Shown one piece after another: positions 5,838 through 64,000 of a DNA stretch of 64,000 bases (its first letter is position 1; each line of letters opens with the position of its first letter). This stretch comes from Orbicella franksi. Its lineage: Eukaryota. The stretch is taken from positions 15,748,001 to 15,812,000 of the forward strand of contig OZ116698.1 of the NCBI GenBank assembly GCA_964199315.1, written 5' to 3'. A program made the position numbers and the translations under genes. The notes below the pieces were generated by a model. The model had not been told where the DNA came from, searched no databases, and saw only the letters and a program-made list of their open reading frames with translations.

Positions 5838-6089
5838 TCCATGGCGACCATTCTGATGAGAAGGTGTTGGAGATGGATTGGCCATGTCACCCACCAAGAA
5901 GTGTCCATCATCAAGACCACCCTACACTGGATGCTAGAGGGACAGCAAGGCAAAAGGAAATGAAGCAGATGGGAAAGACCTGACGGGGCGTTCAAGTCAT
6001 GGCAAAGGACCAGCTGATGTGGAAGGATTACGTTGCTGCCCTACCTGCCACCAAGGTGTAATGGGCAATGGCACGAGTGAGTGAGTGAC
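5838..6089 (+). mobile_element. RTE-clade LINE 3' fragment
   Basis: Translates to RRCWRWIGHV...LHW..EG / AKDQLMWKDYVAAL, typical of the RTE ORF2 C-terminus; (GAGT)n tail. Confidence 0.7.
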
Positions 6090-10300: not shown

Positions 10301-13300
10301 AGGTCCTCTATGCTGGCCAAATTGGAATTTGGAGATGTTGATTTTTGTGGTGGGGGAAAAACTGGTCAGGAGTAGCCGGAGAAAAACCCTCGGAGCAAGG
10401 TGAGAACCAACAATAAACTCAATCCAGCACTGGGCTGGAATCACACCCAGACAACATTTCTTGGAGGTGAGCTTTCTCACCACTGAGCAATCCCTGCTTC
10501 CCATCAACCTCATATAGTAGCATTAAATTTCAGTGCTTGACTTGTTTGGCAGCTCATTACCTGTGCTAAACTAGTCACTATACTTCTCCAAATGTTGTCA
10601 AAGCCACTGGTTAATTTGTTTGGGATGAGATTTTCCAGAATCCATTCCAGGGTTGAGTCAGACACACGACAGTATTCGAACAACACAGTAAATACATCCT
10701 CTGCATCTGGCAAATACACCAAATCTTACACTAAGAGAACATCATCATGATGAAATACATCATTAATAATGGTAATGATGCTGCATTTATACAGTGCATT
10801 GCTTTACAATAAGCCATTTTCAAGTTGCCTTGTACCTCTGTTTCTTTGTGCAAAACCTCTTCTTATGAAAACAAGTTTGATTTGCATGAAAATGAAACTG
10901 TAGGCAGAACTCATTTTCATATGAATGGTTTTGCACAAAGACTCCTTTCGACACAGAGGCAAAAGGCAACTCGGAAATGGCGCATTCAACTTGGGGTGAA
11001 ATTAGACTCCACTCGATGTATTTGCTACTTCATGGCACCCACCTCACCCACAAATATAATGTGAATGAGTCAGGCCACAATATCAGAGACTAAATCTTCC
11101 TCTATTTTTGACACTGATGGGAGCTCTTCAACAGCCCTTACAAATAATTTACTACCAGAACATCAGTTTGAGTTTTTGCTCTAGCAAAATAGACTCAGTT
11201 CAGCTAGAGACAAAGTGCACTCCTGGGTGGAGAGAGGCATTTCAAGAGAAATTTGCCTTGCCATGAAGACAACAGAATAACCTAGGCCAGTGTTCCAATC
11301 AAAATGCATTATTTAAAGTACACATTTCAAGATAAAGGAGGAATGAAATCTGTTACCATAGTCTAAGTCTTTATCAGTCATCCACTTGTTTCCAGACTCC
11401 TCACACACCAACAACAAACAGTCAGGAATGGACAACTTGTGCGTTATGTATGCTGCACTGAAGAGTTGCTCCAAATGAAGTGGAATAGTCCAGTCTGTTG
11501 AAAATATTATAACGAACAGCCAATCTCAAAATCTCCTTAAAAAGTGCTAAGTGAACATACTTAATAATTTCTTTACACAGGTTGTTGACTCAAAAAAATC
11601 CATTAAATGTTGGAAGAACATAATTATTAAGATGATTGTGAATCACAAAAGGGTCTGTTTTCATCAATGCCTTAAAAAACAGGGGTTATTTTACCTTTAC
11701 CAACTTCAAGTTGATAATCATTCACAGAAGTCCTGTCACTAATTATAAGTGTTTCTAATCAACGGCCCACCAATACAAAATAACAGTTTCTCTTACTAAT
11801 TTACGCACTATTCAATTTGTTTTAGACATTAATAGTAGGTTTATTGAGATACTTGTTCTTTAGTACTCAAGACAGTACAAAAAGATATATAAAGTCAAAC
11901 CAATGAAAGAAAAGTAAAGTCCATTTAAACAGTACACTTCTCCCATTTCTCTGATTTTCAAGGGAAAATCTGGCAATCCCTTAATGTTTGACAAAACACA
12001 TGCTGGGACTGAGACCTGAAAATGTTGGAAACACCTTCAGAAATCTTTGGAGTGTACTGGGAAATTTCCAGACCTTTTCAGATATGACTGGTTCCTCTTA
12101 AAAATGTAAGCTCTTCCAGGATAAATGATCTCACCCCAGCCTGTGATTCCCAAAACTGTTGGTAGGTATACTATGTCACCACTGAATATGTATTTTTCAA
12201 TCAGAGGTTGACAAAGGTCAGGTTATATTTTATCATGAACTTAAAACTGATGCAAAAATATTTTTAATTACCAAATCCATTCTTTAGCCTTTTCTGCAGC
12301 CATTCTACACCCTTAGCAAATGAAGGGTTTGTTTTGAGTACCTCAAAACAAATCTTGATTTCATCCTCCAAAGCCTTGAGTACCAGTTCTCTAAGCTCTT
12401 CTATCTCTGACAGAGAGTGCACTGGAGCTATACCATCCCAGAACACATTGCAATCATTCAGCAGCTCACACAGGCACAGGATGATAGGTAACACATGTTT
12501 TTGGAGGAATGGAAGTTGGACTGAAATGGATGCCATGACTGCTTCCATTGAGACATTGTGAAGTTTAAGGGCAAGGGCTGTGGGAATAGCTCCTTGAATG
12601 TTGTTGTTGTTCAGAAATGGTAGCACAATGGCCTCTGTAAACTCCTGAACACTGAGTAGTTGTGTAGGACTGAACTGTAAAACAGGTGACAGAAAACAGA
12701 GTAAACAACTGTCAACTGAAAAAAACTTGGATGCTTGTTTGCATTTTAACGTGTCTGAAAATGATTTGGAGAGAGTTTTGAATGACCAGTAGATTTAAAA
12801 TCAATTACTAGATTATTAATTATTATTTCGCCCTTGATTCTATGAAAGTTATATAGTTGACTCAGGCTGCACCCTCCTCAACCATCACACGACAGAAATC
12901 TCAAGATCATAATCTAATCATCAAATAGAAACACTCGTGAAAGTTTGGGCGAAACTGTGGAAACACTTGCCTGTCAGCTTGTGTTGCCACAGCATTTCAT
13001 GTTCTTAAGAACTTACACTTGTGTTTCTATAACTTGATAGAAACAAGGAAAATGTTTTTCTATTTCTCAAGTACAAATGCCAGCTTATAGCGCATGCCCT
13101 CTTTCATGCCGGCATAATAACAGATTACTTACAGTCAAAAAGGCAGCCATCATGTTCAACAGATTATTCTCCTGTTGTCTTGATGATACACTCACTGTGA
13201 CTGTAATGATTGCCTGGCAAAGTAGTGTTCTCGAGGAATCTGATTTGTCATGTCTCAACAAACACAATACAGGACACCTTTGCAGCACCTAACATATCAA

Positions 13301-14398
13301 AACAATGGTGACACCATAAAAATCATTTGGAAGAATTAACTAAAATATATCGACTATTGGCTTGTATCTGAGCATCCCCTTAGGGTACTAGGCAAATATA
13401 TTAACTTTAAGCAAATTAAAGATCAGAATTAATTATTACTGACACAATTTGGTAGCAATAAAAAGGTTTTGAAGTTTATTTTTTTAAGACTCCATAAACT
13501 GCATGCATTAGTACTGTCCTATGCAATGTCTGACTACTGGACATGTTGCTAATAACATCATACAGTAATCACCTTCCTCAGATCAATTTGTTCTTAAATC
13601 AAAGTATTGTTTTTAGATGTTTGGTCCCCTGGTGTCCATTCTCATTTTTTCACAACCTAACTAACTTGAATTTGTTTCAGAAACTGGTCAAAGTGGATTG
13701 TTATGCTACATTTCAAGATGACCTTACTTTCAAAACAAAATGACCTTATCTTCTACTTGTCAGAGAAGATGACTTATTGATCGATTACTATCCCAATTTG
13801 TTTTCAATCTTGACAATGTTGTCAATCCATACTTCTTAACTGGTTCCTGTTAATGTGAATTACTTTAAACCATTGTCTTGAAGTCTGATTTAATGATGAG
13901 TTACTAAGTCATGGAATCATAAAGAATAAGCCAAGCCACTGCTGGTGATTGTAGAAGTTAACTTACAGAACAGATTGTCTTTGTGTGACCGACACTTTTA
14001 ACTCCTTCCTCTAAAGCCTTGTTAAGAGTGAGGGGTACTGAAAGCAGTGCAGCTCTAGCCAGATCTATTGCAGATGACTGAAGTTGATCTTCCTCGCTAA
14101 TGTCAATCAGTTTATTGAAGGTCATAACAAGCTCCTGCTGAAATGCCATTCTCTCCTCAGCCACCAACCAAGGGTGAAAGAATATTGACTCATTTTCAGG
14201 ACATCTTAAAGAGCAACTCATGAAGAAAGCATACTCTATGATCTGTTGCTGAGCAGAACAAGGCAACTGGGATTGCAAAGTCAACAAAGTCTGAAAGTGA
14301 ATTGAAACCAAAACAAAATGGTTACTAACCATGGACATCAGAGCTATACTACTGATACTGCCAGATGACATAGTTTCTGACTAATTAAAAATTGATTC

Positions 14399-14430
<32 letters not shown>

Positions 14431-17400
14431 CATTATCATTCCCAAAGTACTAAAGGACACTGCTGGGTTGCCATGACTAAGATGATGCCTCATTGACTCC
14501 ACGCCACATTACTTCACAGCATTTTGTTGGTCAAATAGAACTCATCAGAAGGTCAGACTGTAAAAAGTTGAACCCACTCATGGCTGCCACTGTTGAAGAG
14601 GACAAAACTTCCCTAACCTAACTACTTGTAAACAATAATTAAAAGGTAATTTCTTTATGTTACTTTTCTCTCATTTTTTTTTTTAAATATCTTCAACACT
14701 CTTGACCTGTGGCTGTCAGGCTATAGCAATCCTACCACAGAGGTTTGTGTAAACCCCACAGCTCTAGGGGTGAAAGGCTTACACAAGGACTTTCAAAGCT
14801 GATATTTTTTACTTCTGTTTCATTTATAATAATTACAGCAAGGTATGTAATGAGACATAAAGTACTATGTTTTTATTGTGTTTCTGAAAGCCAAAAACCC
14901 AACCATCTAATTTGAATACGAGTTTAACACTTACCACACACATTATTTAGTTACCATCAATGAAAATAGCTTACACTCACTTTATAAATACATGTAGATA
15001 AATCTATAGTACATACACACAGTGCATAAATATATTAGTTTACCTCTTTCATTTCTCTGTAGACTGTGTCATTGGATTTCTCATCAGCACAAAGACACTG
15101 CCTTTGCATGTAGATAATGTCAATCATTTTAAGAGCATGTTGAACATCACTTATCTCAACTGCATGGTTCCTCATGCATTCCAGCCAATCAGATTCTCCG
15201 TGAAATTCCTCTGCACTCAGTAACCAATCAAAACATTCCTTATAGTCTTCTAACCTGCCATCAACTATTTGTAAGTAGAAGCGGAATTGTTCTTCCGTAG
15301 TTTCTGGCTGAAAGAGCAACAAATCCACGGATCCTGAAATTGAATGGACAGAAAAGTAGCTAAGACTTTTATCCTTGAGTCTTCCACAGTCACCCAAACA
15401 ATATCATTAAGTATGACAGTAAAATGTAATGAGTACTACCTTCCTACATGTATATAGTGTGAAAGTTTGGGAGAATTTCAAAAAACCATGGAAACACTCA
15501 TCAGTAGTTCATATTCTCATAACATTTCTCCCTTTCTCAAACTTCCATTCAGGCTTCTATAACTTAATGACATAAACATGGGAAATGTGTTACATTTCTA
15601 AAAGAATTATCTTTGTAAAAATATCATTGGAGATAACAAGATGACTTGTAACACTTTGTTTGCTTACCAACTGGTGAAATGAATTCCTCTTTAAAGCAAC
15701 TTTCTTTGCAGTCAATCAATTCTCTTTTTTTAAAGCCATTGACCCATGTATGCTCATTCTCTGTCGCATATTCTTTGACATACCCCGAGAGACCATTTTG
15801 TAGCCTCACAGCTTGCTCCTGCAGCTTGTGGTCACCAGAGTACAAAACGAAAAAGCATGCCACAGCATAAAGTTTTATGATCCACTTGTGTAAAGGATGC
15901 CATGATCTGTAATCTATCTCACCAATACTATTCAATTGATCATCTTGATCCCAGCATGATGTTACTCCCCAATCATTTATAATAACATGACATAGAAAAT
16001 CAAAACAAGCTGTACATTCAGCTGAAACAACAAGGTCTGACATTTGTTTCTGTTGTCCATGAGCCTTTAGATCATCTCTATGGATTGATTTCACACTTGA
16101 TGTTTCTACCAGGCCATCACCCTCTACAGAACACGTCCCATGTTCACAGGATACAGAGTTTTGACCAAGCCAGTTTCTGGATAAGGTCTCCTCATTCCCT
16201 TTTGCACAATGTTTTCTAAAGTTCAAAGTAACAACATCTGTAATGGCGAAGTCAATAACAGTTTTAATTAAATCCAGCTGTGCTGCTGGCCAGTTGATAA
16301 AATCCCCTTTGAGGCTAGCTACACCTTCCAGCAACACTAATGAGTGAGACTTGGTTCCAGGCACATCACATAGTTTTCTCTCCTGTTCCTCAGTTGATGG
16401 ATGCTGATTTTCTGTCATTAACAAAGAGTTAAAAAGACAGAGAAAAAGAGAGAGATCTTTAAAGCTGGGGTCTTGGATAAGGCACTTGATGACATCCTCC
16501 AGAAGTGATGTTATGTTTTCCACACCAACGGCATAGAGACACTGTGATAACAAAAATAATATTGTGTAGTTCCTGAAAATATCTATACCTCCCCCACGGA
16601 AGAGATTTTTTCTAACACCTCCTCACCCCTCTGGAAATTCCAGTTAAGCTCCATAGATTTCTTTAAATTTTTTGGTCTTCCAGAACGCCTCACCCCCCAG
16701 GAAATTCCAATCCCTTCTGTGCCCAGGGGGAGTATGGATATTTTCTAGAACTGCACATTCAGATAAAATATATACCTATATATATTTTACATAAGTAACA
16801 ACCGATGTAACATCTGTGATTGCATATTTATAGCTGTTAAATTTCTTTTTAGTATCATATTGGATGTTGTTAATTAAAGACTGACATCCTGCAAGTGAAG
16901 TGAGAAGACCACGAAGGCTTGAATATTTCTATTTAAGAATGAATATGGCCTTAATGCTTTGTTTAAAAACAAAATATATGAAGAAAGGATCACCAGACTA
17001 GCCTGCATTTTGTATCAGGACTGCAATCTGCATTTTGTATTAGGTCTGCAGTCTGCATTTTGTATCTAGTATGCATTTTGTATCAGTGTGGGAAACACAA
17101 GAAAGGCGTCCACACTTTCACAATTTCACGATTCACAGATTTTAATCACCCGATCCCAAAAACACACGGCGCTCAAAGTCCACACTGAAGAACATAAAAA
17201 CCCTGCACCCTAAAAACCTACACAAAAAGCTGTTGTTGTCTAGTTGAGATAAACAATCCTCATTACAATAATCAATCAACAATCACTATCAATCAACAAT
17301 CACTAATGCTTTGTGCAATTTCCAACATCAGGCCTGCAGTCTGCACAGTGTGCATTTTGCAATGGGTCTTTAGTCTGCATTTTGCACTGAATGGTTACAT

Positions 17401-18101
17401 TGGCCTCAACAACCAGAGACTCAAGATTTTGTATCAATTTAATTTTAATATGTTTAATTTTTAGTTATAGGTCCCTTTACAAGACTCCTCAAGCTTATAG
17501 CTCTTATAGTTATTAGTTGAAATAAAGGTGATCTATATCTATGTAGCTATTTACCACAAAATAGCACATTGACCAATAAAATTTTACACTGCAGGTTAGT
17601 ATACACCTATGGACTTTGCACAAAGACGGTATCAGAGCTCTTTAAATTACATACCTCTACCAAAAGCTCACTCCATCCCACTTCCTGCACCAGCTCTAGG
17701 TAAAAACTAACGCCAATTTGGGGCAAAGGCGGAAAGCTGTCAAAATAATCTTCCTCGGGTGACTCGCCAAACTCAAGGCCACCATATCTCCTAAACAGCG
17801 AGGAGAATACCCAGGAATGGATCTTAAACTCAAGTTCTGTAGCTCCCACTTCGTGTAAATTGTTTTTCTCGTCAAGAGGTGATTTCTGCGTCATTTCCAC
17901 GATAGCCTCTGAAACGATTTGTATCGCTTTACTGCCCTTGCCTTTCTCTAACTCGTTTAGACCTCGGACAGCCTCTATATCCGCTAACAAAAACGCAGTA
18001 TGTACTACAACAGTTTCTGGGCAATAATTCATCTCTTTCAAACGAATAAACTCTTTCTCGTGTACCGATTCTCTCCACCTCCGCCGCCCGAACTCCGCCA
18101 T
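7136..18101 (-). CDS. GEMIN4: Gem-associated protein 4 (SMN complex component); 12 coding exons, ~1,099 codons, internal TGA at 8491-8489
   Basis: Exons 18101-17655, 16541-15668, 15333-15044, 14290-13967, 13288-13133, 12674-12272, 11494-11357, 10706-10561, 10020-9940, 9176-9125, 8577-8435, 7381-7136 are all GT-AG with matching phases and total 3300 nt. Motifs NYCPETVVVHTAFLLAD, LPHCTWKEWKRI, QLSALLFEMLEILRSPLCSAW and VFAHVCHVM...DQLFVLTLD match human Gemin4 as recalled ([59 protein letters not shown]...EPLYVLALE). Confidence 0.85.
7721..8383. mobile_element. Non-autonomous Mutator-like (MULE) element in GEMIN4 intron 11
   Basis: ~35-bp perfect TIR tggcaggtatattttgcaggttgcaggttgaaatt; 9-bp TSD cgcaagaac (7712-7720, 8384-8392). 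Confidence 0.88.
8435..8577 (-). CDS. GEMIN4: GEMIN4 exon 11, contains an in-frame TGA
   Basis: cttgcag|AT, phase 1, to AAT|gtgagt, phase 0; DVYQLSALLFEMLEILRSPLCSAWATPHV*LYVIRHYITAIKEIVDEN. Confidence 0.8.
8633..9115. mobile_element. Truncated Kolobok-like non-autonomous DNA element in GEMIN4 intron 10
   Basis: Starts ttaaagtgcatatgac (TTAA followed by an RR terminus); carries gttgccatagcaac at 8908-8921; right terminus missing. Confidence 0.55.
9125..9176 (-). CDS. GEMIN4: GEMIN4 exon 10
   Basis: Long pyrimidine tract ...ctgtatag|CCT, phase 0; PDFTESVPCLQKKESNQ; G|gtaatg, phase 1. The only candidate I found that fits both flanking phases. Confidence 0.7.
9940..10020 (-). CDS. GEMIN4: GEMIN4 exon 9
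   Basis: gttatag|ATT ... CAG|gtgctt; ILPHCTWKEWKRILEMCRHLIQRSILQ. Confidence 0.8.
10286..10502 (-). mobile_element. tRNA-derived SINE of a second family, degenerate
   Basis: Minus strand gggaagcagggattgctcagtggtgagaaagctc (A-box-like) ... ccgagggtttttctccggctactcc core. Confidence 0.65.
10561..10706 (-). CDS. GEMIN4: GEMIN4 exon 8
   Basis: tttgccag|AT, phase 1 (5' boundary uncertain; alternative aag acceptor 15 nt upstream) ... CAG|gtaatg; DAEDVFTVLFEYCRVSDSTLEWILENL...SLAQ. Confidence 0.7.
10808..10986. mobile_element. MITE
   Basis: TIRs aataagccattttcaagttgcc / ggcaactcggaaatggcgcatt. Confidence 0.7.
11357..11494 (-). CDS. GEMIN4: GEMIN4 exon 7
   Basis: ttcaacag|AC, phase 1 ... G|gtaaca, phase 1; DWTIPLHLEQLFSAAYITHKL... 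Confidence 0.78.
12272..12674 (-). CDS. GEMIN4: GEMIN4 exon 6
   Basis: ttttacag|TTC ... G|gtaatt; FSPTQLLSVQEFTEAIVLPFL...KNGF. Confidence 0.85.
13133..13288 (-). CDS. GEMIN4: GEMIN4 exon 5
   Basis: atgttag|GTG ... ACT|gtaagt; VLQRCPVLCLLRH...AFLT. Confidence 0.83.
13967..14290 (-). CDS. GEMIN4: GEMIN4 exon 4
   Basis: cactttcag|ACT (an in-frame alternative acceptor lies ~90 nt upstream) ... TCT|gtaagt; TLLTLQSQLPCS...TICS. Confidence 0.82.
14398..14438. repeat. (CAT)n microsatellite in GEMIN4 intron 3
   Basis: catcatcat run with rare variants; the minus-strand poly-Asp frame closes at TAG. Confidence 0.85.
15044..15333 (-). CDS. GEMIN4: GEMIN4 exon 3
   Basis: caatttcag|GA, phase 1 ... GAG|gtaaac, phase 0; SVDLLLFQPE...REMKE. 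Confidence 0.85.
15668..16541 (-). CDS. GEMIN4: GEMIN4 exon 2
   Basis: tatcacag|TGT, phase 0 ... G|gtaagc, phase 1; 874-nt open frame. Confidence 0.88.
16561..16759. mobile_element. MITE in GEMIN4 intron 1
   Basis: TIRs attgtgtagttcctgaaaatatc / gatattttctagaactgcacatt; relatives at ~25030-25150 and ~36200-36270. Confidence 0.7.
17655..18101 (-). CDS. GEMIN4: GEMIN4 exon 1
   Basis: aaaATGGCGG start at 18101 (alternative Met at MNYCPE); GAG|gtatgt donor; CpG-rich, as expected of a first exon. Confidence 0.85.
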
Positions 18102-52212: not shown

Positions 52213-52281
52213 TTAGTCACCAATTTCTTCAATGCCTTCACTCTCTGTCACCAGTGCACGTTCTAGAATCACTTGCCCTTC
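52213..52281 (-). CDS. YPEL5: YPEL5-B exon 6
   Basis: catttag|GAA ... GAC TAA. Confidence 0.93.
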   Translation of the reverse strand, partial: EGQVILERALVTESEGIEEIGD

Positions 52282-55200
52282 CTAAATGCAGGTATAAAGA
52301 AGGTATATGAGTATTGCTTTATTACTTGGCAAATCTAATGACACACAGAACTCTATTTAAAAAATTGTCACCATTATCATTATTGTTATTAATTATTATC
52401 ATTATTATTATATTATAATAATTGGGACAATCATAAATTACAATGTTAGATATACCAGTAATACACACCTTATATTGTTGGGACTCTTCTGTTGCATACT
52501 CCTGCATCATAAACAAACAGAACATGCACATTGAGTATTTCCCACCAACAGGTAAAGTATAAGAAATCAAAAGTATGTCACTTAGCTACAACTTAGAAGG
52601 GGCAGAGGCCTAAGAGTTAGCGTGTTAGCCTCCAGGATGTCGAAGCCTACATTCTCAGACAGAACACTTTTTTAATTATTTTAAATTCCCTGGTGTACAA
52701 ATAATATGGAAGTGCACATTATTTGGAAAACCTAACAAAATGCTAGGTCAAGCACATCAAACATTTTTTTAATAAATGGTAACCTTGACACTTACATACA
52801 TCCAGCCCAGTTTTGTATCACAGTTCTTGCAGAAGACATCCCGCACCATGTGCCTCCCAGTGAGCTACAAAATAGAATTACAGTCAAATCTCCCGTCAGC
52901 AGATGCAAAAAAACAGCTGTTCACTAAGGAGAGGTGTCCACTTATAGCAGCCAAATTGGATTATTTTCAATGCTTAATATCAATAACTTTCAAGAAAATA
53001 AATATTATATAATATTATTTTTTCTCCAGCTTTTCTGGACAAAATTTTCTGTGCAAAATTTTATCTAGAGGGAGTGACAGTTAATTGTAATGATAATAAC
53101 CTTGTGATTCTTGTTTGCACAAACAACTAAAACTATCTATGTTATGCCAGTTAAAATTTTGGTTTTCATTTTCCTGAGCATGTCATTTTCATTGACAGAA
53201 CATGACATAAAGGAAAATTAAATCATATCAAATTTTAAACTGCATATATAATAAATTTATCAACACATACCATCACTCTATCTTGGACTTCACTGTATGA
53301 TAAATTCACCCTATACCACAGATAAAAACGTAGACATTGCATGAAAGTAAAGAAAAAGCAACATGAAGTAATGCAATGACAATGTAAACAACACCACAAT
53401 GACGTCACTAGGGGGAACACAACTAAAGCCTGTAACCAAACATAGGTACGCAAGGCCTGCAAGAGATATTTTTTGGTGAACTAAACGTCTTGGAGATAGG
53501 AGCATTCATGGAACTGTTTACAGTAACGGTTTGGTTAATTTGACAAGTGTTTTTGGTTGCGATGTACAGCAAGAAAGAAACTGGAAATTTATGATGTACA
53601 TACAATGTTACATCGGTAATGGTAAGATACCTAAATAGTAAGCCATAAAATGTTTGACTGAACAAACTACAGTAATCTGACACGTCTCCAGATTAATGTA
53701 GGTACCATCTTATTTTCTAACAGGCAATTTGATTCATTCTTTGATACAACCCACACTGTTATTGGTGTGACACGTACACATGCATAACTCCCTCACTCAC
53801 CGATCACATAGCCCTTCCAGCCCCCAAGAGGGATTTTTGCTCAAAAATACTCGAGTTCAGAGAAGTTTTTGCATTTTATACGAGTCATAAGTTCACCTTT
53901 TTTACACAACACAACACAACACAACACCACTACTTCACCGAAAATAGAAAGGAAGAGAAAAAAAAAACCTCTCTGACACGCTGAAAGTCTGATTCAATTA
54001 AATTGTACTTTAACTTGGTGTCACGCAGCCTTCAAAGTACATTTGAACAATTTTCATACTTTTTACCTTCAAAAATACCAGACTGAAAAGAATGTCATAA
54101 AATGCCCATCAAATAAAAATATTAAACTGCTACTGCAGGGACATAAAAACTGTCCAGAAATGAAAGCTTCTTTTTTGTTTAATATCCTGGGAACAATATC
54201 TGATAACTTGTCAGCTCTAGACTAAGAGGTGAGACTAAGAGGTATTTTTTTTAGTAGGTAAGAGATATTTTTTTTCACAAAAAAAAATAACTCAAAAACT
54301 TAACCCTCAGTTATTTTCTCACTAACTTGAGGATTAGAGAAAGACTGCTGACTGAGATAGCCTTGAGTACTTATCTTCTTGGCACTGGTCAGCACTAAAT
54401 GGGCTGGATTTGACAAGGTTAACACAACCACTTTTGGCTTCAAGGCAAATATTTGACAACAAAAGCTTGCCTGGGAAAAGTTAATAAGATGCTGCTATAA
54501 GTCTGTTGAGACTTTGCCACACCAGGAGTGAATTTATTGAGCAAAGATCTTTACAAGCAGGCTAAAGACCTTTCAAAAAGACAGAGAGGGTGGTAAAACA
54601 ATAAAAGAGGCCTCTGCTGGCCCAAAGTATCCCTTCATGCCATAGCATATTCTGGGTTGCACAGCATTAAGTAACTTGAAGTATCTTTACTCCTTCTCCC
54701 CCTTGGATAGGACTAACAAGGTTAACCACTCTCACCAGCATTCACTGGTACCCATGTATACATGTTGTTATGCATATGCATAGTTGTAATTTTTTTAGGT
54801 AGGTGTACACAATTAGTAGAGGGGACGCTACCCCTCAGCTAAACATTTTAGACACGGTAATAAAGTTTATTATTATTATTATCATTATATCACATTTTCA
54901 ATAGACACTCACACTTTCTTGAATAGAAATGCTCTCCCAGTAGCTCCAGTAAATTTCTGTTAGTCAAAAACAGGACTCAAGTAAGAAACATTAGGTAAGG
55001 GTATAATTAATTTAATTAAAACCATTAACTGTTGATTTTCCAAATTGTCCAAATTAGAGCTCAAGTTGGCTATGTGTGTTAATTATGGGCTACATGCATT
55101 CCCAGTCTCGGAGTAACTGAATAAATCAAAGTTTCTCAGAGACTGGGCAAGCATGTACCCATTTTGATTTATCTGAACAAACATTCCTTGGCCTGTCACA

Positions 55201-56868
55201 ATCTTGGCCAATAGCCCTGAGCATCCAATTTTTCCCCAAATTTCCTGAAATTCAAGTTAATCTTAGGAAAATAAAAAACTGGAAACATTACACGAGTGTG
55301 TTCTGACCTTTTCTGCAGGCACTTAGTACATAATTTGGGAGTCTGGGATAAATGAAAGATGTATAGAATTTGTGAGAGAGCACAGAAAGCAGGAGGCGTT
55401 TCTCTCCAATTTATTAATCCTAATTTTTATACACTAGCAGTCAGATCCAAAATATGTCTGCAATAATTATGCATCTGCTGTTTTATTCATCTTGTATAAA
55501 ACCTTCCGAACTAAGTCTGCAAAAATAATGTGTCTACCCTTTTACACATCTAGTATAGATAAGACATGCACTATCAGATCCTGCAAATCCCCAGTTTGTC
55601 ATTCAAGATGTACAAGAAAAACCACATACATGTAGTTTGTGTTTTTGCATTATCTTTCTGTACCATCTTACACTGAGATGCATATAACCATTCAGACACC
55701 TAATTATAGGTTGGTAATCATATGAAATATACAAGTGAAATAATTTAAGAATTATTCAGTTGATTTGACTTACAAATGATTCAGTCTTTAGGTGAGTGCA
55801 ATTTGAAAACTTTTGAAATAACACTCAGAGTGCAAGACCTTATTTTTTTTTATAGTTGAACATCCATGTATAACTCATTTCTTATATATCACTAAAAAAT
55901 TACAGACAGCCCTGTATTAATTTGCACTGCAGTGCAAACATTAAAAATTAATGATAAATTTGCCTGCTCTCAGCCAATTACAATGAAGTAATTTTCTAAG
56001 CCATATACTTATAAAGCAGGTAATTTGAATGTCATTTTTGATAAATTGTCTATATGCATGCAAAAGGTTGTCCATCTCTGCCAAGTTCATCTCTTAGATA
56101 TACTGGTTTATCTTCATGTATAACCAGACACTAAAAAACTTGCCTAAGCATGTCTCAATAGATAGACTTCCTATCTATAGTTCAGTCTCAGAAAGAGAGA
56201 AATTATATTATTATGAAAATACTTGGCTTATGTTCTGCTCCTATATTTACATGTAATACAAAATTAACTGATATTTCAATATAGATCATGATTATGTTAG
56301 AGAAAACAATATCAGTAAAAGGTCTACGACAACCACTCTGAAATTTTCCGGTTAGAAGAATGAAACGCAACCCCAAACTATGTACATGGTGATTTACGTT
56401 AGAGATGTAACATATAGCTCTGTTATATTCCAATTGGCAGAACTGTATACTAATACAGAGTGTATACCAATAAAAGGAAAATGATAATGTTAATTAAAGG
56501 GCAGCCAATGAAATATCGTTCCTCTGAGTATCAAAGGAAGGACATATAATAATGATAAGGCCATTCATGCCAGGCATTTTAATAAGCTTACTTCGAAATT
56601 TAAGCTTAATGTTCAAAGAATTCAAGCGAAAAAGAGATGTTACTTGTTTAATTCATTCTCTACACAGGTTCTTCTACCTATCTTGTAAGTCTACATCATT
56701 TAGCCTGGCAAAACAGATTAAACGGAAGAACTCGATCCTATATATTCATTCGTCCTGTAACTAGCTTACCATGGATGTGAGTTGCGATCGATTCGTCAAA
56801 GCAGTGTCACAGTTTGCGCAAGAATACAGTCTAGCCCCACCAGGGTGATGAAGAAAGATACGACCCAT
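52213..56868 (-). CDS. YPEL5: Protein yippee-like 5, paralogue B (117 aa, 6 coding exons)
   Basis: Exons 56868-56770, 54956-54913, 53310-53271, 52864-52796, 52501-52469, 52281-52213, all GT-AG and in phase. [117 protein letters not shown]; both CxxC zinc pairs intact. Confidence 0.95.
52469..52501 (-). CDS. YPEL5: YPEL5-B exon 5
   Basis: gatgcag|GAG ... AAG|gtgtgt; [11 protein letters not shown]. Confidence 0.92.
52796..52864 (-). CDS. YPEL5: YPEL5-B exon 4
   Basis: ttttgtag|CTC ... TAT|gtaagt; [23 protein letters not shown]. Confidence 0.95.
53271..53310 (-). CDS. YPEL5: YPEL5-B exon 3
   Basis: ggtatag|G ... ATG|gtatgt; [13 protein letters not shown]. Confidence 0.93.
54913..54956 (-). 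CDS. YPEL5: YPEL5-B exon 2
   Basis: ctaacag|AAA ... GT|gtgagt; [15 protein letters not shown]. Confidence 0.93.
56770..56868 (-). CDS. YPEL5: YPEL5-B exon 1
   Basis: ATG at 56868 ... ATG|gtaagc; not listed in the ORF track. Confidence 0.95.
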
Positions 56869-57611
56869 GTCCTGAGCTTCCTTTCTTGACGAAAATGAGA
56901 GCGGAAAATTAAAAGATATACTTATGACACTTGTAAACAAACACAGAGCGAAAATCTTCCTACCGCGAACTGAACCTTCTTGTATATTTTGGTCTCTTAG
57001 TCACGTGATCATTAAGCTGGTATGATTGGCGGACATGATGATGTCAGGACTCTCTGAAACTTCCGGGACCGGCCTCCGGGACCTTTAAAAACAAAAAGTC
57101 CTAAAAGAGCTATATGCTTTTCGAAAGAGGTTTTCCACTTCTTCTCTGAGCGATGACCTACGAAAGAAATGCAAAGAATACGTAGATAGTTGGCAGTCGT
57201 AGCGACATGCCAAATTTTCTGCATTCAAAGCTGATACGTTAGCCGTAGGTAGGGTTGCCCCGTGGTGGGGTATGACTGAAAATTCCTTCATTGATTTACC
57301 AGGTGATTGGTGTAAAAAATAAAATGACACGAAGTTGGAAAAACTCCATAAGCAGTGCTAGCCCCTACATGTACAACCCGCGTGCATACGGCATGCCGGA
57401 AGGCAATTTGTCTAAAGGTGACATCATCAATCGTTTGTAACCAATGGTGTCTCGTATATTCTTAGTATCCAGTTAGTCGTCACGTGACTTGAAAACCAAA
57501 ACAAAGAACGGTCCGGAAAGATTGAAGTTCGCGGTAAATACTTCGGTTTCTGTGTTTGTCGTCAATTTTTCAGTTTTGTGTGTCCCATTCCTATCGAACT
57601 GAACTCAAAAC
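56869..57611. promoter_or_regulatory. Bidirectional CpG-rich promoter between the two YPEL5 paralogues
   Basis: GTCACGTGAT 57000-57009, ATTGG 57025-57029 and ACTTCCGG 57059-57066 facing B; CCGGAAG 57396-57402, CCAAT 57441-57445 and GTCACGTGAC 57479-57488 facing A. Confidence 0.75.
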
Positions 57612-57710
57612 ATGGGTCGTATATTTCTTGATCATCCCGGTGGAACTACACTTTATTCTTGTGCGAACTGCGACACTGCTTTGACGAATCGATCGGAGTT
57701 AACATCCATG
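57612..57710 (+). CDS. YPEL5: YPEL5-A exon 1
   Basis: aaacATGGGT ... ATG|gtacgt. Confidence 0.95.
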
Positions 57711-60700
57711 GTACGTATGCGAATAATAAATAGTGGACATCCTGCTGAGTATCTTAGGCCAGTTTTTGTGCCAAGAACTATGTTGTGGAATAAATGATAC
57801 AGATTGCTCCTTGGCTTACTTTAATACATTCGAGAATCGATGGGAAAAAGAGAGTAAACAAAGATCGCTTGATTTGTTTTCAAGGTAACTTAATACCTAT
57901 ATTGAGATGTACTTTACATAAGTTTCATTAACATAAGCTTGAAGACTAATTTCTTTTAAAATGAACAGAATTTCATTGGGTGTCTAATAATTGACATTGT
58001 AGTGCCGCTAATTACAGTGCATGCAATTGAATTCTGCGCAATAATGGGTCGCTAATTGAAAACTGATCAAAGGGTAGTTTACCACCAGGAGAGTTTCAAA
58101 CCGTATATAAAAGGGATTCTGTGCATGCCATCTATCACAGATCTACTTTCTTCTCAACATTGACGCTTTTCCTTTGATGGCTCCACTTTCTTGTTAAATG
58201 CCCAGAAGTCTATTCCTGATTTTAATCAAGCCTTTTCTTGGACAGGTAAAACTAATGCTTTTTTTGATATTTTGATGATCAGAGGTTTAATGGAGCAACT
58301 GGAAGAGCATTCCTGTTCAAAAAAGTGTGAGTGTCCTTTACATAATTACATCATTATAAACATAGGTTTTTGTCAAAAATAAATTTTACAGAGAATATTA
58401 CATGGTGGTGCAAAGATATAAATTTTATATTCAAGAGGTAAAACAAAAATTTTACAAACAAGTGCAGCTGTCTGGGATTAAAAATTTTATTGTTTCATAA
58501 CACTCAAAATTCAAATTAATATTTTTAAGCCACTATGTAATTTGCTCTTTATTATGTAGACAAACTGACTATTTGCACAATCAACCATCAGAAAGCGGGA
58601 AATTATGTCATCAGTATCCTTACTAGTGAGGACATAGACCCTCACTAGCTATAGTGAGGATAAGGAAGATATGTCACCCAGCTATGCAGGTCCCAGATGA
58701 AGTTTCTTATGGGTGTCTGGAAAACCCGAATAGCGAATAGCGAATAGTCGCAAATAGCGAATAGTACCAAATAGTGCGAATAGTCTCAAATAGTACAGTT
58801 AGTGGCGAACAGTCGCGAAAAGTGGCGAATAGTGACGAATATTCGTCAATAGTCACCGCTTTAGATCTAATATCCAGCGTTAATTAATTATCCAAATAAG
58901 CAACAGAATTTCAGTGAATTTATTGCCTTTTCTTCTCCGGACTCAGGCTAGTAGACTGTCCATCGCCGACATTAAGAAAACAGAAAACGCAAGGATGACC
59001 TAATAAAGACGTATTTACGCTTTGCAGCAGTTAAAACAGAAGAAATTACATTTAGAAACACCTTTTGTCCTGATAAGCGTCTGTGCTTTTTAGTGGAAAA
59101 ATCCCATCCTAAGTTGTTACGAGGTTTACTGCAAGATACTGGGTACCCTATTTGTTACTATTTGCCACTATTTGCCACTATTCACCACTATTCGAGACTG
59201 TTCGCCACTATTCGCACTATTTGCTATTCGCTATTCGGGCTTTCCAGACACCCGTTTCTTATGAATTTTAGAAGTGGTGTATTTTACATCCAAATGTTTT
59301 AAAGCAATTTATTATATGGCTAAAGGGAATTCTGCTAACAGGATAGACAAATTGAACCTAAACAGCTGTGTCAGACTGTCAGCAGAGTTTTAAACCCCAG
59401 TAACATCTTTTCAACAGGGTCAATTTATCATACAGTGAAGTTCAAGATAGAGTAATGGTATGCATATATTTTGTTTTCTCAGTAGTTCTTATCTTAAAAC
59501 ATAGTCTTTACCTAACTGAAGAAGCACTGTAAGAAAAAAAAGATATAGAACGTAAATTATAAACAGTTTCAGTAATATCTCATTTGTATTCTCTGATCCC
59601 TGCAGACGCATTCAGAGTCCTCATGTACAACAAAAGTATAACTATATAGTTTGCAAGGCTCCAGTAGCAGACCATTCAATCTTACAGCTAAATATAGTTT
59701 ATAATCTTTTTGAAATCCTTTTTCAGTCTGATCAGCTTATACTGCACGGTATTGTCCAAGATTGCTGTCTATTTACTGTACTGAATGGTTTTGCATAATA
59801 ATTATTTGTAGCTTACTGGGAGGCACATGGTGCGGGATGTTTTCTGCAAGAACTGTGATACAAAACTGGGCTGGATGTATGTAAGTGTCCACTAGTATCC
59901 ATTGCAACCTTCCTCTCTTAATGGGTCTGAAATTAGATTACACAGAGCAAACAGAAATAGATTAAAACAAAATGGAATAAAATGTCATATTACAAAACAA
60001 AGTAAGCTAATAAGTCATAAATTAGATGCGTAATTTGTGTTTTTAAAACATGTTGTGAAATCATTTAATGCTGTAATTTAGAAGAAAAAGAGGGACCACT
60101 CAAACATTAACCCCATAAGGCCATTACGTATTCTTGAGTGGCTTTGACCTTTTTTTGTTGTTCTGTTTAATTACAGGAATATGCAAACGAGGAAACACAA
60201 CAATATAAGGTTTGTGGATTAAAACCTGTGTGGGTGAGACTGCACAAAACATATCAATAACAACAACAAAGCTCTTGCCCTAAGGGAACAGGGTCAAAAC
60301 CAAAGTTGATGTTGTCAGTAACCAGTTGTTCGGCTTCGACAAAACCTGGATCGGACTGGACCAGGTCACGGATTGGATCACGGATCGGATCAAGGAAAAA
60401 AAATTCAAAATTCAAAATTCAAGATTCAAAATTCAAAATTTTGTTGAGCAAATTACACTAGAGTGACTACTGTGAGCAGAACATTTTATTTAATTCAGCT
60501 GTGATATTCCTTTATTCTTTTATAATATCAAGCCAACTGGGAGCTGGTCACAGATGAATATTTTTCAGGCTGTTGGGTCATGTCTTCATATCTTTCTCCG
60601 CAGTTCAGATAAATGATATTTCGTATATTCGCTTGCATCAAAGGTAAACTGTCATGAAACGAGTCAGCATGGTAATAAGATGAACGTATGAATCGAAACA

Positions 60701-61910
60701 CAAAAACTAAAAACACTAAAAAAATTAAACACCTGATGATTTCAAACAATTTCCGGTCCGTTTCTGAGACAGATCTATACTTTTGCAAGATGTGAGTTTG
60801 GAATGCGATATTTCATACTGGAATAAAATGAAACAAACCATTTGTATTTCAGGGAAATATAGCTGTTTTACAAAAAATTATAGGAATAACATCGATAGTG
60901 TGAACGATAATGCAACCCGAGAATAAACAACATTTAAGGAGTTACGTCACAAGTTTTAGAGTCATTTTTAGGGTCGTAAAGAGTTGCCTTTATGTGGAAT
61001 AAAACCTAAAATGATCGTGTTCTAGGATAGAAAGCACTTAAGAGGCAAGAACAAATCAAAACGGAACGAGGATCGTTAAGGATGCCAAAGATTAACGAGG
61101 ACTGCAAATGACGAACTTGAAAAACTAGGCTAGTTTTTTCAAGATGCGCAAATCGTGACGTAGCTCCTCTAAAGCAAGTCATGTCCCTAAGCTTTCGTAC
61201 GTAAGCTTTCTCATCAACTGTAACGCTAACTGTAACACTCACATCTGACACGAAAAAGTAGCCGAGAATTAGCTACTGATACTAACAGCAATTTCAAAAA
61301 TGAGAATGGGAGGTTCACCCAAACTTTGAGCCAACTAACGTTCAAATATAACTACATCTGCCTGTTCATTACAATTTAAATTTGTCCTAAATTAGGCACT
61401 TATGTGGCTTTTTAAATGACCTCTTGTCATTCTCTGTAATTAACATGTCATTGCGTCAAATTCGGGATTCTTATATTTATTTAACATATTTTAGTTTTCT
61501 ACTTTTATTTTTTATTTATTATGATCTTAGAAACGATTTGATTGTTTTTTTTCTTTAAAACTTTTTTTTTTTCTGTGATCCGATCCGTGATCCGATCCGT
61601 GATCCGATCCGCGATCCGGTCCGTGATCCGATCCGTGATCTGGTCCGTGATCCGGTCCGGTCTGGTCCAGGTTTTGTCGATGCCGACCAGTTGTTTTTAA
61701 ACAGAATTAACGTTTATCTGGAATTAAACCCTGAAGTTTAATAGCTATCATTGCATTTGTCTCGTGGCAAACCATCCTGTGGACTTCAATATTGAACCCC
61801 TTTTAAGTTGACTGTGTTCTGTTGCACCATACTTGTAGGAAGGTCAAGTGATATTGGAGCGGGCCTTGGTCACTGAGAGTGAAGGAATTGAAGAAATTGG
61901 TGATTTGTAA
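57612..61910 (+). CDS. YPEL5: Protein yippee-like 5, paralogue A (118 aa, 6 coding exons)
   Basis: Exons 57612-57710, 58283-58326, 59418-59457, 59812-59880, 60177-60209, 61839-61910, all GT-AG and in phase. [118 protein letters not shown]; AATAAA at 62008-62013. Confidence 0.95.
58283..58326 (+). CDS. YPEL5: YPEL5-A exon 2
   Basis: gatcag|AGG ... GT|gtgagt; [15 protein letters not shown]. Confidence 0.93.
58711..59253. mobile_element. Non-autonomous MULE-like element in YPEL5-A intron 2
   Basis: TIR gggtgtctggaaa(a/g)cccgaatagcgaatag; subterminal GCGAATA repeats; 9-bp TSD gtttcttat (58702-58710, 59254-59262). Confidence 0.88.
59418..59457 (+). CDS. YPEL5: YPEL5-A exon 3
   Basis: ttcaacag|G ... 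ATG|gtatgc. Confidence 0.93.
59812..59880 (+). CDS. YPEL5: YPEL5-A exon 4
   Basis: atttgtag|CTT ... TAT|gtaagt. Confidence 0.95.
60177..60209 (+). CDS. YPEL5: YPEL5-A exon 5
   Basis: aattacag|GAA ... AAG|gtttgt; [11 protein letters not shown]. Confidence 0.92.
60331..61685. mobile_element. Composite non-autonomous MULE-like element in YPEL5-A intron 5
   Basis: TIR cggc(t/a)tcgacaaaacctgga; subterminal GATCCGATCCGT repeats; 10-bp TSD accagttgtt (60321-60330, 61686-61695); nested repeats inside. Confidence 0.88.
60938..61167. mobile_element. Nested Kolobok-like MITE
   Basis: ttaa|ggagttacgtcac ... gtgacgtagctcc TIRs inside the 60331-61685 element. Confidence 0.6.
61839..61910 (+). CDS. YPEL5: YPEL5-A exon 6
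   Basis: acttgtag|GAA ... TTG TAA. Confidence 0.93.
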   Translation, partial: EGQVILERALVTESEGIEEIGDL

Positions 61911-62683
61911 AAATTAATGTAGTTTTAAGTTATGGTCTGTTGTGTTTAACAAGGACCATGTTTGTAATGTTTCTGTGACACAGCTGGACAAACTAGGCAA
62001 CTGTCTGAATAAACCTGTTAACAATATGATATCTAAGCTAATTTATTATGGCTTTTTATGTTCTGTGCTTTCAAATGTGTAGTTAGTATCACATGTATCA
62101 AATGAAAACTTGCTGGTAATCAGAACTGAAAAGTACTGATGATCTGCCAAGGATCTGATAACAGTACACTCAAGTAAACCTGCATTCATATCTATAGTGC
62201 TGTACTCCTTCTTCCTCTTTACTATGATTATGGACACCATTTTTATGACAGTTGCCTGTTCTGTTCATTGTGATTGTAAAATGTAAATTTATGACTATTA
62301 TGCAAAGAGTTTTAAGCTTAACTTCTGTAGAGTTTGTACATTTGCATATTGAAAGATATTGTGTACTTTGTTTAAAATTCAGTGTTTGTATATTTAATAA
62401 TGATGAAATTTTATATAAAACGGTAATACAAAATTTGGTGTTAACATTTGGTGCTATCACGTTAGCAAATAGATAGGCCAGATTTGTAAGTAATTGAACA
62501 TTAAATTTGTTGAAATAATATTGGATTAACACTTTGGTTGAGCATTTTGCAAGTATGCTGTTACCATAATTTTGCAAGCCATATTAAATTTAAAGTTGTC
62601 TTACCTGTACCGTTTACCTGTGATATTCTCTTTGTGGTCACATGGTACCCAAATGAAAACCCCTGATTTGATGAAGGGTAACA

Positions 62684-62988
62684 ACAGACGTGGATTTAGG
62701 GGTGGGGTAAGGTGGGATAAATTGGGCAGCTAGCCACCCCTCTTTGGAAGAACAAAAAATAAGAAAAATAAGAAAAATGTGAATATTATCGCCGAAATAT
62801 AGGGAAACACTCAGGACAGGTACCTCATGATAATTTCTTTGTGACATTGCTAGTACTTCTGGTTTAATAGTTTTCAATTACCAGTAGATTCCAATTATCA
62901 AATTGTCACGTTTTTGGTGCATGCCCGTTTGACTCTGGAACCCCAAGATACCAGTCACCCACCCTTGAAAAATCCTGGATCTGCATAT
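62684..62988. mobile_element. Degenerate MITE (CAG..GGAT(C/T)(C/T)AGG-type TIR)
   Basis: cagacgtggatttagg ... cctggatctgcatatg termini, related to 3335-3485. Confidence 0.45.
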
Positions 62989-63231
62989 GAAGATATTGAA
63001 GACTGGTTTGTGAAATGAGGTATGGAAAAAATGCAGTTCTTCCCATTCTTTAACGTGTAGCCTTGTTTCCAAGGCTAATGTGGGGTGCAGAGAAGTCTTT
63101 GGGGAAGTGTGTGTGTGAACTGTGGCTTGACAAAACTAGCCTGATATGCTGTCAAAGCATACTGAAAAAAATTGGCAAGAACATTATCTGCAGATGCAGT
63201 CTGGGTAAAGAGTCATGGTGCTCCACCTGTC

Positions 63232-63615
63232 TTAATCAAAACTATAACAAAATTCTTGAACATGATTGGTTATCAGCAGCCCGATTTGAGCATCAATTGG
63301 ACAGTACACATCATGCTAGTAATTGGACAGTGCACGTCATTTTGCATGCACTGTTGCGGTGCAGTTTGAGTAAACTGCTGTTTTTCATTCATAACAACGT
63401 TTTATCGTTCAGTGCTCAATCGATGGTTTGTTCGTTTCTCGAATTTTGTCATAGTTTTGATTAACTGGTAACAGGACATCGTGTCATCTAATTCATTCTG
63501 TAATCATACTCGTGATTAACAAATCGGACTCCTGCTTCATGGTCGTCCGATTTTGTTATTCACTCGTATGATTACAGACTGAATTGGACTCCACTCAGTC
63601 CTATTACTATTATTT
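63232..63615. repeat. Interspersed anthozoan-type repeat
   Basis: Recognised from memory (taatcaaaactataacaaaattcttgaa...ccactcagtcctattactattat); a related piece lies at ~18755-18897. Confidence 0.4.
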
Positions 63616-64000
63616 ATGGAGAGTTTTCATGACATCACCTTAGCCATATTAGTGTTTCCAAACAGTGAAATTTCTCTCCTTAGGAAAATTAGTTCTTATG
63701 TAATTGTTTGTAAACACCAATGTTGCTATGTTACTATTGTTCAGTTGTAATGTTGGTATTTGTTCAGTGTCATTTAGGACTGCATTTTGATCAAGGTGAT
63801 GTAATTTTTAGGGTTGTTATGGAACACTGACTGTACGTGATGTTGTAGTGATAGAGTGTTATAGTGATGCAGACCTCAACTAGCACAGCAGTGCTTAAGA
63901 CTCTGACACTGAAATAAACATATTATTTAGTTACTGCTTCCAGTATGCTATGTTACAGTTACAAATAGAAACAGTGGATATGGAATCCAACAGAACTGGC

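Follow-up and report, generated by a model that had tools for sequence, protein, structure and literature searches.

Two intact genes for YPEL5, a highly conserved protein, lie head-to-head on opposite strands within a 64,000-nucleotide stretch of the Orbicella franksi genome (hereafter the window). They are an old duplicate, with both copies intact and under strong purifying selection. The account that we consider likely as a whole is an ancient tandem duplication of YPEL5 followed by inversion of the copy encoding 117 residues, with a separate promoter for each gene and short-tract gene conversion between the two.

Both gene models were rebuilt from the window sequence, which contains no N:

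52213..56868, minus strand: minus copy, YPEL5 of the 117-aa type, CDS span of the model with GT-AG introns; exons 56868-56770, 54956-54913, 53310-53271, 52864-52796, 52501-52469 and 52281-52213 (99/44/40/69/33/69 nt); protein of 117 aa
57612..61910, plus strand: plus copy, YPEL5 of the ~120-aa type (118 aa in the Orbicella window), CDS span of the model; exons 57612-57710, 58283-58326, 59418-59457, 59812-59880, 60177-60209 and 61839-61910 (99/44/40/69/33/72 nt); protein of 118 aa

All 10 introns are bounded by GT..AG, phases match between the copies, and the two ATGs are 743 nt apart. These models agree with the initial annotation, which had reported two complete six-exon genes on opposite strands with the same exon lengths and phases, and had given the same distance between their start codons. 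Its count of eight substitutions plus one C-terminal residue is likewise reproduced, the proteins differing at positions 7, 12, 13, 29, 34, 36, 88 and 91, with an extra C-terminal Leu in the plus copy. At the nucleotide level, the coding sequences differ at 47 of 351 nt (13% of sites; Nei-Gojobori dS 0.80, dN 0.035, omega 0.044). In an inverted-repeat search, the only similar segments were the six pairs of exons, together with a few bases beside them, and a short stretch of promoter; intron bodies showed no match, as expected from the earlier remark that the introns have no evident similarity. The 117-aa protein matches Orbicella faveolata XP_020629237 and Oculina patagonica XP_078382295 at every residue, and the plus-copy protein is 97-99% identical to the Oculina protein and to a Logan transcript.

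The assignment to YPEL5 is clear for both copies. Both proteins score above the gathering cut-off of Pfam Yippee-Mis18 (PF03226; 45.7 and 45.8 bits versus 26.6), carry the zinc-binding CxxC pairs C17-x2-C20 and C72-x2-C75 (CxxC pairs are present in 16 of 16 coral and anemone sequences), and have YPEL5 as their best named match, with ~82% identity to vertebrate YPEL5. Human YPEL5 in the PDB (8qbn chain Y) is matched with E=1e-60 and ~82% identity over 114 residues. Genome-wide, the only YPEL5 loci are the two window copies, and one separate gene of the YPEL1-4 type lies on contig 12.

The pair is not confined to Orbicella. A 117-aa type, marked by K34, T36 and the ancestral ...IGD end, and a ~120-aa type, marked by R34, N36 and a C-terminal extension of 1-3 residues, are adjacent at genomic loci of six genera (Porites, Pocillopora, Stylophora, Desmophyllum, Oculina and Orbicella), and both also occur in Acropora and Montipora (as transcripts). 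The pair is thus present in eight of the eight scleractinian genera examined, from the complex and robust clades, with Pocillopora represented by three species. At this locus the outgroups, the sea anemone Actinia and the octocoral Dendronephthya, each have a single copy. The initial annotation had taken the pair to be lineage-specific, a description that fits only its head-to-head orientation, restricted to Orbicella, Oculina and Desmophyllum. It also knew of no prior description: a literature search indeed found no paper describing the YPEL5 pair, but both types are already annotated in RefSeq or GenBank as "yippee-like 5", under neighbouring accession numbers.

About 30% of Porites and Pocillopora genes are tandem duplicates, and old arrays stay clustered (Noel et al. 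2023, PMC10236652); YPEL is not mentioned in that study. The YPEL5 pair, adjacent in six genera and with orthology by type supported by the type residues and the tree, counts among the tandem duplicates of Scleractinia. It resembles the clusters described there (PMC10236652) in that adjacent paralogs have been held in place since before the complex/robust split, but it has just two genes, of a slowly evolving housekeeping type and not of an expanded family of immune genes or receptors, and one of them is inverted in a subclade. It is a tidy, fairly ordinary case and no new kind of system.

The two genes are in tandem on one strand in Porites, Pocillopora and Stylophora, and head-to-head in Desmophyllum, Oculina and Orbicella, with ~750-800 bp from ATG to ATG. 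Across the loci compared, the 120 type has an unchanged orientation with respect to a BET bromodomain gene and a second neighbour (the X gene, whose Porites and Oculina versions are homologous). In the head-to-head layout, which is probably derived, only the 117-aa copy is inverted with respect to the two neighbours. The duplication would predate the split between complex and robust stony corals and would be later than, or separate from, the lineages of sea anemones and octocorals, giving an ancestral head-to-tail layout of X gene, 117 and 120 types, with a convergent BET gene on the far side. A small inversion in the ancestor of Desmophyllum, Oculina and Orbicella would then have turned round the 117-aa gene and its promoter with it, producing a divergent pair. 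The inverted duplication proposed initially is accordingly better described as a likely tandem duplicate of which one copy was later inverted.

The polarity of this inversion is a parsimony argument from two tandem lineages, with orientation read in six genera and Acroporidae represented by transcripts only. One may alternatively suppose that the head-to-head layout is ancestral, arising by inverted duplication, and that the tandem layouts of Pocilloporidae and Porites result from separate inversions. The ATG spacing of ~750-800 bp common to three families would be consistent with this, the orientations were read in genera outside Acroporidae, and the region is clearly prone to rearrangement. 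However, two independent inversions instead of one would have had to produce the same order and orientation of X, 117, 120 and BET in one complex and one robust lineage, and we regard this scenario as unlikely. In the window itself, no X gene was found within 22 kb of the pair; it lies at about position 7.1-13.3 kb or more, ~34-40 kb from the pair, and is turned round with respect to Oculina, indicating repeated rearrangement of this neighbourhood. When the eight longest open reading frames of the window were scanned against Pfam, no domains were found.

The phylogeny of the coding sequences is consistent with an ancient duplication before the complex/robust split. Although the alignment comprises only 351 nt and backbone support is weak, paralogs never cluster by species, and a branch with support 48/90 separates the 117 type from the rest. 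In the best tree the 120 type forms a grade; its monophyly is not rejected (p=0.44). AU tests against a clade of the two window copies and against a clade of all six head-to-head genes gave p=0.046 and p=0.023, respectively. Omega ranges from 0.012 to 0.055 along both ortholog series which, together with the value for the window pair and the grouping by type in the tree, bears out the earlier reading of an old duplication with both copies under purifying selection.

Paralog dS is 0.39-0.80 in head-to-head species, and ortholog dS across the later complex/robust split is well above this (1.7-2.4). In Oculina (0.39) and Desmophyllum (0.46), paralog dS is no higher than the ortholog dS between the genera, which could suggest a recent duplication in the Orbicella/Oculina lineage, with convergent likeness to the types of other corals. 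This is very improbable: Porites, Acropora and pocilloporids share the K34/T36 versus R34/N36 difference and the C-terminal extension, the tree groups by type with the AU tests speaking against grouping by species or lineage, intron bodies are unrelated, and the low dS is unevenly distributed over the gene, as expected under conversion. A recent inverted duplication was rejected on the type-wise tree, the shared type residues and the unrelated introns.

Under the preferred ancient duplication, the low paralog dS points to probable short-tract, patchy gene conversion between the copies, which is clearest in the sequence of exon 4:

59796..59889, plus strand (partner 52787-52880, minus strand): probable gene-conversion tract, exon 4 with flanks, 94 nt, 94% identity

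Identity is 79-85% in exons 1, 2, 5 and 6, and exons 3-4 differ at 5 of 109 sites versus 42 of 242 elsewhere (Fisher p=0.0007). Moreover, both Orbicella copies have changed in concert relative to both Oculina copies (sites 192, 204, 205 and 207; codon 69). A hypergeometric test of site overlap for parallel change in the two copies was significant over all sites but not when restricted to third positions, and overlaps are similar in tandem species; the argument for conversion consequently rests on the clustering within exon 4 and the comparison of dS values. Unique shared-derived sites are few in each species pair (two in Orbicella, one in Desmophyllum, none in Oculina). Painting of tracts by diagnostic sites, with tandem species as references, was uninformative, four sites being strictly type-fixed; a version using pocilloporids only was swamped by the pocilloporids' own changes. 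Conversion would partly homogenise the copies, selection holding the type-defining residues. Since parts of the genes are homogenised, the dS of 0.8 understates their age and the pair looks younger than it is; slower rates in the lineage concerned could account for part of the low paralog dS. As in the concerted evolution of inverted paralogs such as palindrome arms, there is a run of near-identity (at exon 4), derived synonymous changes are shared, and paralog dS is below ortholog dS. In contrast to such arms, the YPEL5 tracts are short and limited to exons with a few flanking bases, the introns are unrelated, and diagnostic residues escape homogenisation. Short-tract conversion that makes duplicates appear too young calls for caution in Ks dating of coral duplicates.

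Both copies are expressed, and polyA reads (four RNA-seq runs, adult tissue) back every examinable junction, with copy-specific spliced reads found for each and expression of the minus copy about twice that of the plus copy. For the minus copy, the intron 1 junction has 53 polyA reads, and the exon 2-3, 3-4 and 4-5 junctions appear as cross-mapped joints or loose ends. For the plus copy, introns 1-4 have 17, 19, 83 and 31 junction reads (the 83 include reads from the other copy), and the exon 5-6 junction is a 35-read loose end. The junction check proposed with the initial annotation thus shows both copies to be expressed and correctly spliced.

Redundancy and drift of one copy, or an origin of the pair as an artefact of assembly or haplotigs, are barely credible: the older assembly of O. 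faveolata has this locus scrambled, with a partial 104-aa model, but both copies have intact frames, canonical splice sites and the copy-specific reads just described, both ortholog series have omega values under 0.06, the pair recurs in independent assemblies of eight genera, and the copies have 13% divergent coding sequences and unrelated introns. A haplotype artefact, already thought unlikely, was rejected on these grounds. The window aligns with an O. faveolata scaffold at ~99% identity over 8.6 kb (blastn).

The region between the two genes comprises two promoter modules and a spacer:

56965..57046, minus strand: minus-copy promoter module, order and spacing conserved upstream of YPEL5; GTTCGCGG-like start region, TCACGTGAC E-box (CACGTG at 57002-57007), CCAAT (57025-57029) and CRE-like TGACATCATC (57037-57046)
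57047..57418, no strand: 372-bp spacer between the modules
57419..57534, plus strand: plus-copy promoter module, order and spacing conserved upstream of YPEL5; CRE-like element (57419-57428), CCAAT (57441-57445), GTCACGTGAC E-box (57479-57488), ACCAAAACAAAG (57495-57506) and GTTCGCGG (57527-57534)

Six coral genera keep the module order and spacing upstream of both paralogs, as does Actinia upstream of its single YPEL5. The spacer gave no blastn alignment with Oculina or Desmophyllum, and RNA depth is zero over 57034-57397 in all four runs. The assembled minus-copy transcript extends to about 56970, with depth zero from 57034, and plus-copy contigs from two runs start at 57499. The divergent 5' ends are therefore ~530 bp apart, below 1 kb, an approximate figure from contig ends and binned depth. 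To judge from these motifs, each copy keeps its own mirrored ancestral promoter module and there is probably no single shared promoter. The one shared promoter proposed initially would be replaced by a full module for each copy, separated by the RNA-free 372-bp spacer. Each gene would still use its ancestral core promoter, with the CRE-like element, CCAAT and TCACGTGAC E-box lying immediately before the start of the transcript.

Classic bidirectional promoters are one CpG-rich nucleosome-free region common to unrelated genes. The YPEL5 pair resembles bidirectional-promoter pairs (starts within 1 kb) in its opposite strands, its ~530-bp distance between 5' ends and its co-expression in one RNA sample, but differs in consisting of two homologous modules that face away from each other across an unconserved spacer and that are inherited copies of the single-gene YPEL5 promoter. 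With its own core promoter for each gene, the pair fits the positional definition yet probably has two mirrored promoters. The locus is thus a small, datable example of a tandem duplicate turned divergent by inversion, with promoter modules traceable to a single-copy YPEL5 ancestor.

To our knowledge, the only well-defined role of YPEL5 is the gating of the WDR26-CTLH ubiquitin ligase. Human YPEL5 is a substrate-competitive inhibitor of this E3 and no adaptor: its G2-R3-x-F5 basic motif, a degron mimic, fills the pore of the WDR26 propeller, and its C-terminal tail sits in a WDR26 groove (Gottemukkala et al. 2024, PMC7616709). The suggestion that the two coral genes supply CTLH adaptor isoforms is at odds with this work. 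Both coral copies begin with M-G-R-I-F and so possess the G2-R3-x-F5 motif, and they share the Yippee fold domain and the two CxxC pairs with the human chain. Unlike human YPEL5, they are adjacent paralogs whose tails are shorter and also differ from each other; the inhibitor role has been shown for the human protein. By homology, given the retained motif, both CxxC pairs and 82% identity to the human chain, both most likely dock on the WDR26 dimer of CTLH E3 and block substrate entry. Since the human tail lies in the WDR26 groove, one may speculate that the coral copies differ in affinity or off-rate.

The two copies may serve separate functions. A bolder proposal, which we hold to be doubtful, is that a lack of interchangeability has preserved both over hundreds of millions of years, as two distinct WDR26-CTLH gatekeepers; the fixed differences at residues 34 and 36 and the tails would then confer different affinity or substrate competition. 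If true, this would represent a coral-specific control layer over CTLH-dependent metabolic turnover, on which nutrient, light or symbiosis state, for example, could act via the conserved E-box promoters. A constrained duplicate in all stony corals examined is also a natural pair with which to ask what regions of YPEL5 tune CTLH gating, the candidates being the C-terminal tail and residues 34 and 36. The Orbicella genome has CTLH-domain genes at no fewer than four loci.

Both gene models were rebuilt straight from the window sequence, each with six exons:

57612-57710, 58283-58326, 59418-59457, 59812-59880, 60177-60209, 61839-61910; plus strand; plus-copy YPEL5, 118 aa
56868-56770, 54956-54913, 53310-53271, 52864-52796, 52501-52469, 52281-52213; minus strand; minus-copy YPEL5, 117 aa

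Exon lengths and phases are the same in both copies, save for one added codon before the plus-copy stop; all introns are bounded by GT..AG, and the two ATGs lie 743 nt apart. The two proteins are separated by 8 substitutions and a terminal Leu, the coding sequences by 47 differences in 351 nt. The initial annotation, which had described two intact YPEL5 genes on opposite strands, was thus accurate in every particular. Both proteins score above the Pfam threshold for Yippee-Mis18, share ~82% identity with vertebrate YPEL5, and match the human YPEL5 chain 8qbn_Y (E=1e-60). Between the copies, dS is 0.80 and dN 0.035 (omega 0.044), and omega ranges over 0.012-0.055 along both ortholog series, in agreement with the purifying selection that had been proposed. 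An inverted-repeat search of the pair matched only the six exons of one copy to those of the other, with very little flank, and a short stretch of promoter; no similarity was seen between intron bodies. No further YPEL5 locus was found in the 497 Mb genome; its remaining YPEL gene, of YPEL1-4 type, lies on a different contig.

The pair had been regarded as lineage-specific, a view that its distribution contradicts. Two 'yippee-like 5' proteins per taxon, with neighbouring accession numbers, were recovered from 90%-identity clusters in Oculina, Orbicella, Pocillopora (three species), Stylophora, Desmophyllum, Porites (two species), Acropora and Montipora; the pair therefore occurs in all eight genera, and both genes are already in public annotation records. 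Annotated proteins with exactly the 117-aa minus-copy sequence exist in O. faveolata and Oculina patagonica. Coding sequences of both copies were taken from genomic loci in six genera and from transcripts in Acropora and Montipora; the six-exon structure is common to all extracted YPEL5 sequences, and two types are recognisable in every stony coral genus examined. The first (117 aa) carries K34, T36 and an ancestral ...IGD end, the second (~120 aa) R34, N36 and a C-terminal extension of 1-3 residues. As Actinia and human YPEL5 both have R34 and T36, and the Actinia protein ends in ...IGD, K34 is derived in the 117-aa type, and N36 and the tail in the ~120-aa type.

In the maximum likelihood tree, paralogs never cluster by species; the 117-aa type forms one side of a weakly supported branch (48/90), and monophyly of the ~120-aa type is not rejected (p=0.44). 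AU tests disfavour grouping the two window copies together (p=0.046), as well as all six genes of the species with head-to-head copies (p=0.023). Outgroup loci are single-copy: Actinia (two assemblies) and the octocoral Dendronephthya each carry one YPEL5 among different neighbours, and a second copy was not seen within 10 kb. The presence of both types across the stony corals examined, the type-wise tree and the single-copy outgroup loci indicate that the duplication predates the complex/robust split of Scleractinia; it was not seen at the locus in Actinia and Dendronephthya.

Gene order bears on how the head-to-head arrangement arose. In Porites, a flanking gene of ~1,060 aa (gene X), the 117-aa type and the ~120-aa type follow each other on one strand throughout. 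Stylophora and two Pocillopora species have the 117-aa and then the ~120-aa type on the same strand, and a BET-bromodomain gene comes next in convergent orientation. In Orbicella, Oculina and Desmophyllum, the ~120-aa type is still convergent with the BET gene, the 117-aa type is reversed, and the ATGs are ~750-800 bp apart. Here the BET gene lies just past the right end of the window, and its linkage to YPEL5 is kept in Pocillopora, Stylophora, Oculina and Desmophyllum. Gene X, which flanks the 117-aa type in Porites and in Oculina, is homologous between these two genera, and also has a homologue in the window:

~7100-18100; minus strand; gene X homologue, ~1,060 aa, no Pfam match

Against both flanking genes, the 117-aa gene alone is flipped. 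With the tandem order found in a complex lineage and an early robust one, the most parsimonious history would be a tandem duplication and a later small inversion, a single event on the branch leading to Desmophyllum, Oculina and Orbicella, the polarity being read from the six genera with genomic loci. The reverse polarity, with the head-to-head order ancestral and the tandem order derived, is less simple, as it requires two matching inversions. The gene orders thus favour a tandem duplicate with later inversion of the 117-aa gene over the inverted duplication initially proposed. The window homologue of gene X is ~34-40 kb away from the pair, in reversed orientation relative to Oculina; the region has thus been rearranged a second time in Orbicella. 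The BET-family gene (BRD2/3/4-like) occupies ~2000-6000 of the adjoining 15812001-15822000, on the minus strand, convergent with the plus copy.

The divergence of the two copies is uneven, with 5 of 109 sites differing in exons 3-4 and 42 of 242 in the remainder (Fisher p=0.0007). Oculina paralogs have the same pattern (p=0.024), which was not seen in species with the tandem order. At CDS sites 192, 204, 205 and 207, the two Orbicella copies have the same changes relative to the two of Oculina, among them a switch between Arg codons, in two steps, at codon 69; an overlap test of such co-changes restricted to third positions was not significant. Among paralogs, dS amounts to 0.39-0.80 in the three species with head-to-head copies, against 1.2-1.3 or saturation in tandem species; these values are based on ~76 synonymous sites only, and lineage rate differences contribute to them. 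Orthologs of Orbicella and Porites or Acropora give a dS of 1.7-2.4, even though these lineages split after the duplication. Uneven divergence, co-changes and paralog dS below ortholog dS are what short-tract gene conversion would predict, and a dS of 0.8 accordingly understates the age of the pair.

A single shared promoter had been suggested for the two genes, and is unsupported by the sequence. A conserved module, comprising a CRE-like TGACATCATC, CCAAT, TCACGTGAC, ACCAAAACAAAG and GTTCGCGG, is present in every aligned YPEL5 copy, once for each gene of the pair:

56965-57046; minus strand; promoter module of the minus copy, from alignment
57419-57534; plus strand; promoter module of the plus copy, from alignment

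The 372 bp between the modules gave no alignment even to Oculina. In 13 of the 14 YPEL5 genes examined, the single YPEL5 of the two Actinia assemblies included, the ATG is preceded at 126-145 nt by a CACGTG E-box, the core recognised by TFE/MITF, USF, MYC and clock bHLH factors. By position the pair fits the definition of a bidirectional promoter, but it is made up of two mirrored copies of the ancestral single-gene promoter.

Raw reads of two polyA RNA-seq runs, together with two RNA contig sets, were mapped on 54850-60300. None of the four has any RNA coverage between 57034 and 57397, and transcript contigs stop at ~56970 on the minus side and start at 57499 on the plus side. In one polyA run (X23), the minus-copy intron 1 junction was covered by 53 reads, and those of plus-copy introns 1, 2 and 4 by 17, 19 and 31. 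The plus-copy intron 3 junction had 83 reads, about two thirds of them with minus-copy letters at 59442, 59841 and 59856; minus-copy reads fell on the near-identical plus exons because minus-copy exons 3-4 lie outside the mapped stretch. The same cross-mapping accounts for 'opposite strand' joints 54913/59418, which thereby document the minus-copy exon 2-3 junction. Loose ends in X23 added minus exon 4-5 (61 reads), minus exon 3-4 (13) and plus exon 5-6 (35). These copy-specific reads indicate that both genes are transcribed and correctly spliced, the minus copy at ~2x the plus-copy level in X23; spliced transcripts of both types also occur in Stylophora, Acropora and Montipora runs. Variants with ~50% allele frequencies in X23 polyA reads (56928 C>T, 57597 A>C, 57638 C>T) sit in the 5' UTRs and, within plus-copy exon 1, at a synonymous site, and are ordinary heterozygosity or population differences.

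In the human complex, a WDR26 dimer is bridged by YPEL5. Residues G2, R3 and F5 at the YPEL5 N-terminus mimic a degron and plug the propeller pore, the C-terminal peptide sits in a groove at the side, and contact with the second propeller is made by the folded domain; substrates such as NMNAT1 are thereby blocked (PMC7616709). Both coral proteins retain M-G-R-I-F, both CxxC pairs and the core, and CTLH-domain proteins are encoded at at least four loci in the genome; together with low omega, this leads us to expect that both act as working WDR26-CTLH modulators. Type-fixed differences are limited to residues 34, 36 and the tail. The tail is a WDR26-contacting element in human YPEL5, which is, speculatively, the sole structural hint that the two copies may be non-redundant.

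Literature on YPEL5 or yippee with corals and cnidarians yielded no account of the pair. Noel et al. (2023) report that tandem duplicates make up around 30% of the genes of Porites and Pocillopora, with ancient arrays staying clustered; YPEL is not mentioned in that study. The pair is a new example of known processes (ancient tandem duplicate, local inversion, gene conversion), not a new kind of element.

The window is ~99% identical over 8.6 kb, mostly non-coding, to an Orbicella faveolata scaffold (GCA_002042975.1), and so belongs to that species or to a sibling within Orbicella. Compared with window 57830-64000, segments 57830-60242 and 61686-64000 are out of order in that scaffold, and part of the plus-copy region is present twice; the partial 104-aa YPEL5 model of O. 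faveolata is explained by this scrambling of the older assembly. Plus-copy intron 2 contains a 543-bp MITE-like element (58711-59253) whose 38-nt terminal inverted repeats are 95% complementary and which carries GCGAATAG-type repeats internally. It is covered by RNA contigs to a depth in the thousands, which indicates a family that is highly repetitive and/or transcribed at other genomic sites. In plus-copy intron 5, a ~1.4-kb insertion (60302-61714) with ~95-nt inverted arms (77% complementary) of GATCCG/GGTCCG-type short repeats is probably another non-autonomous DNA transposon.
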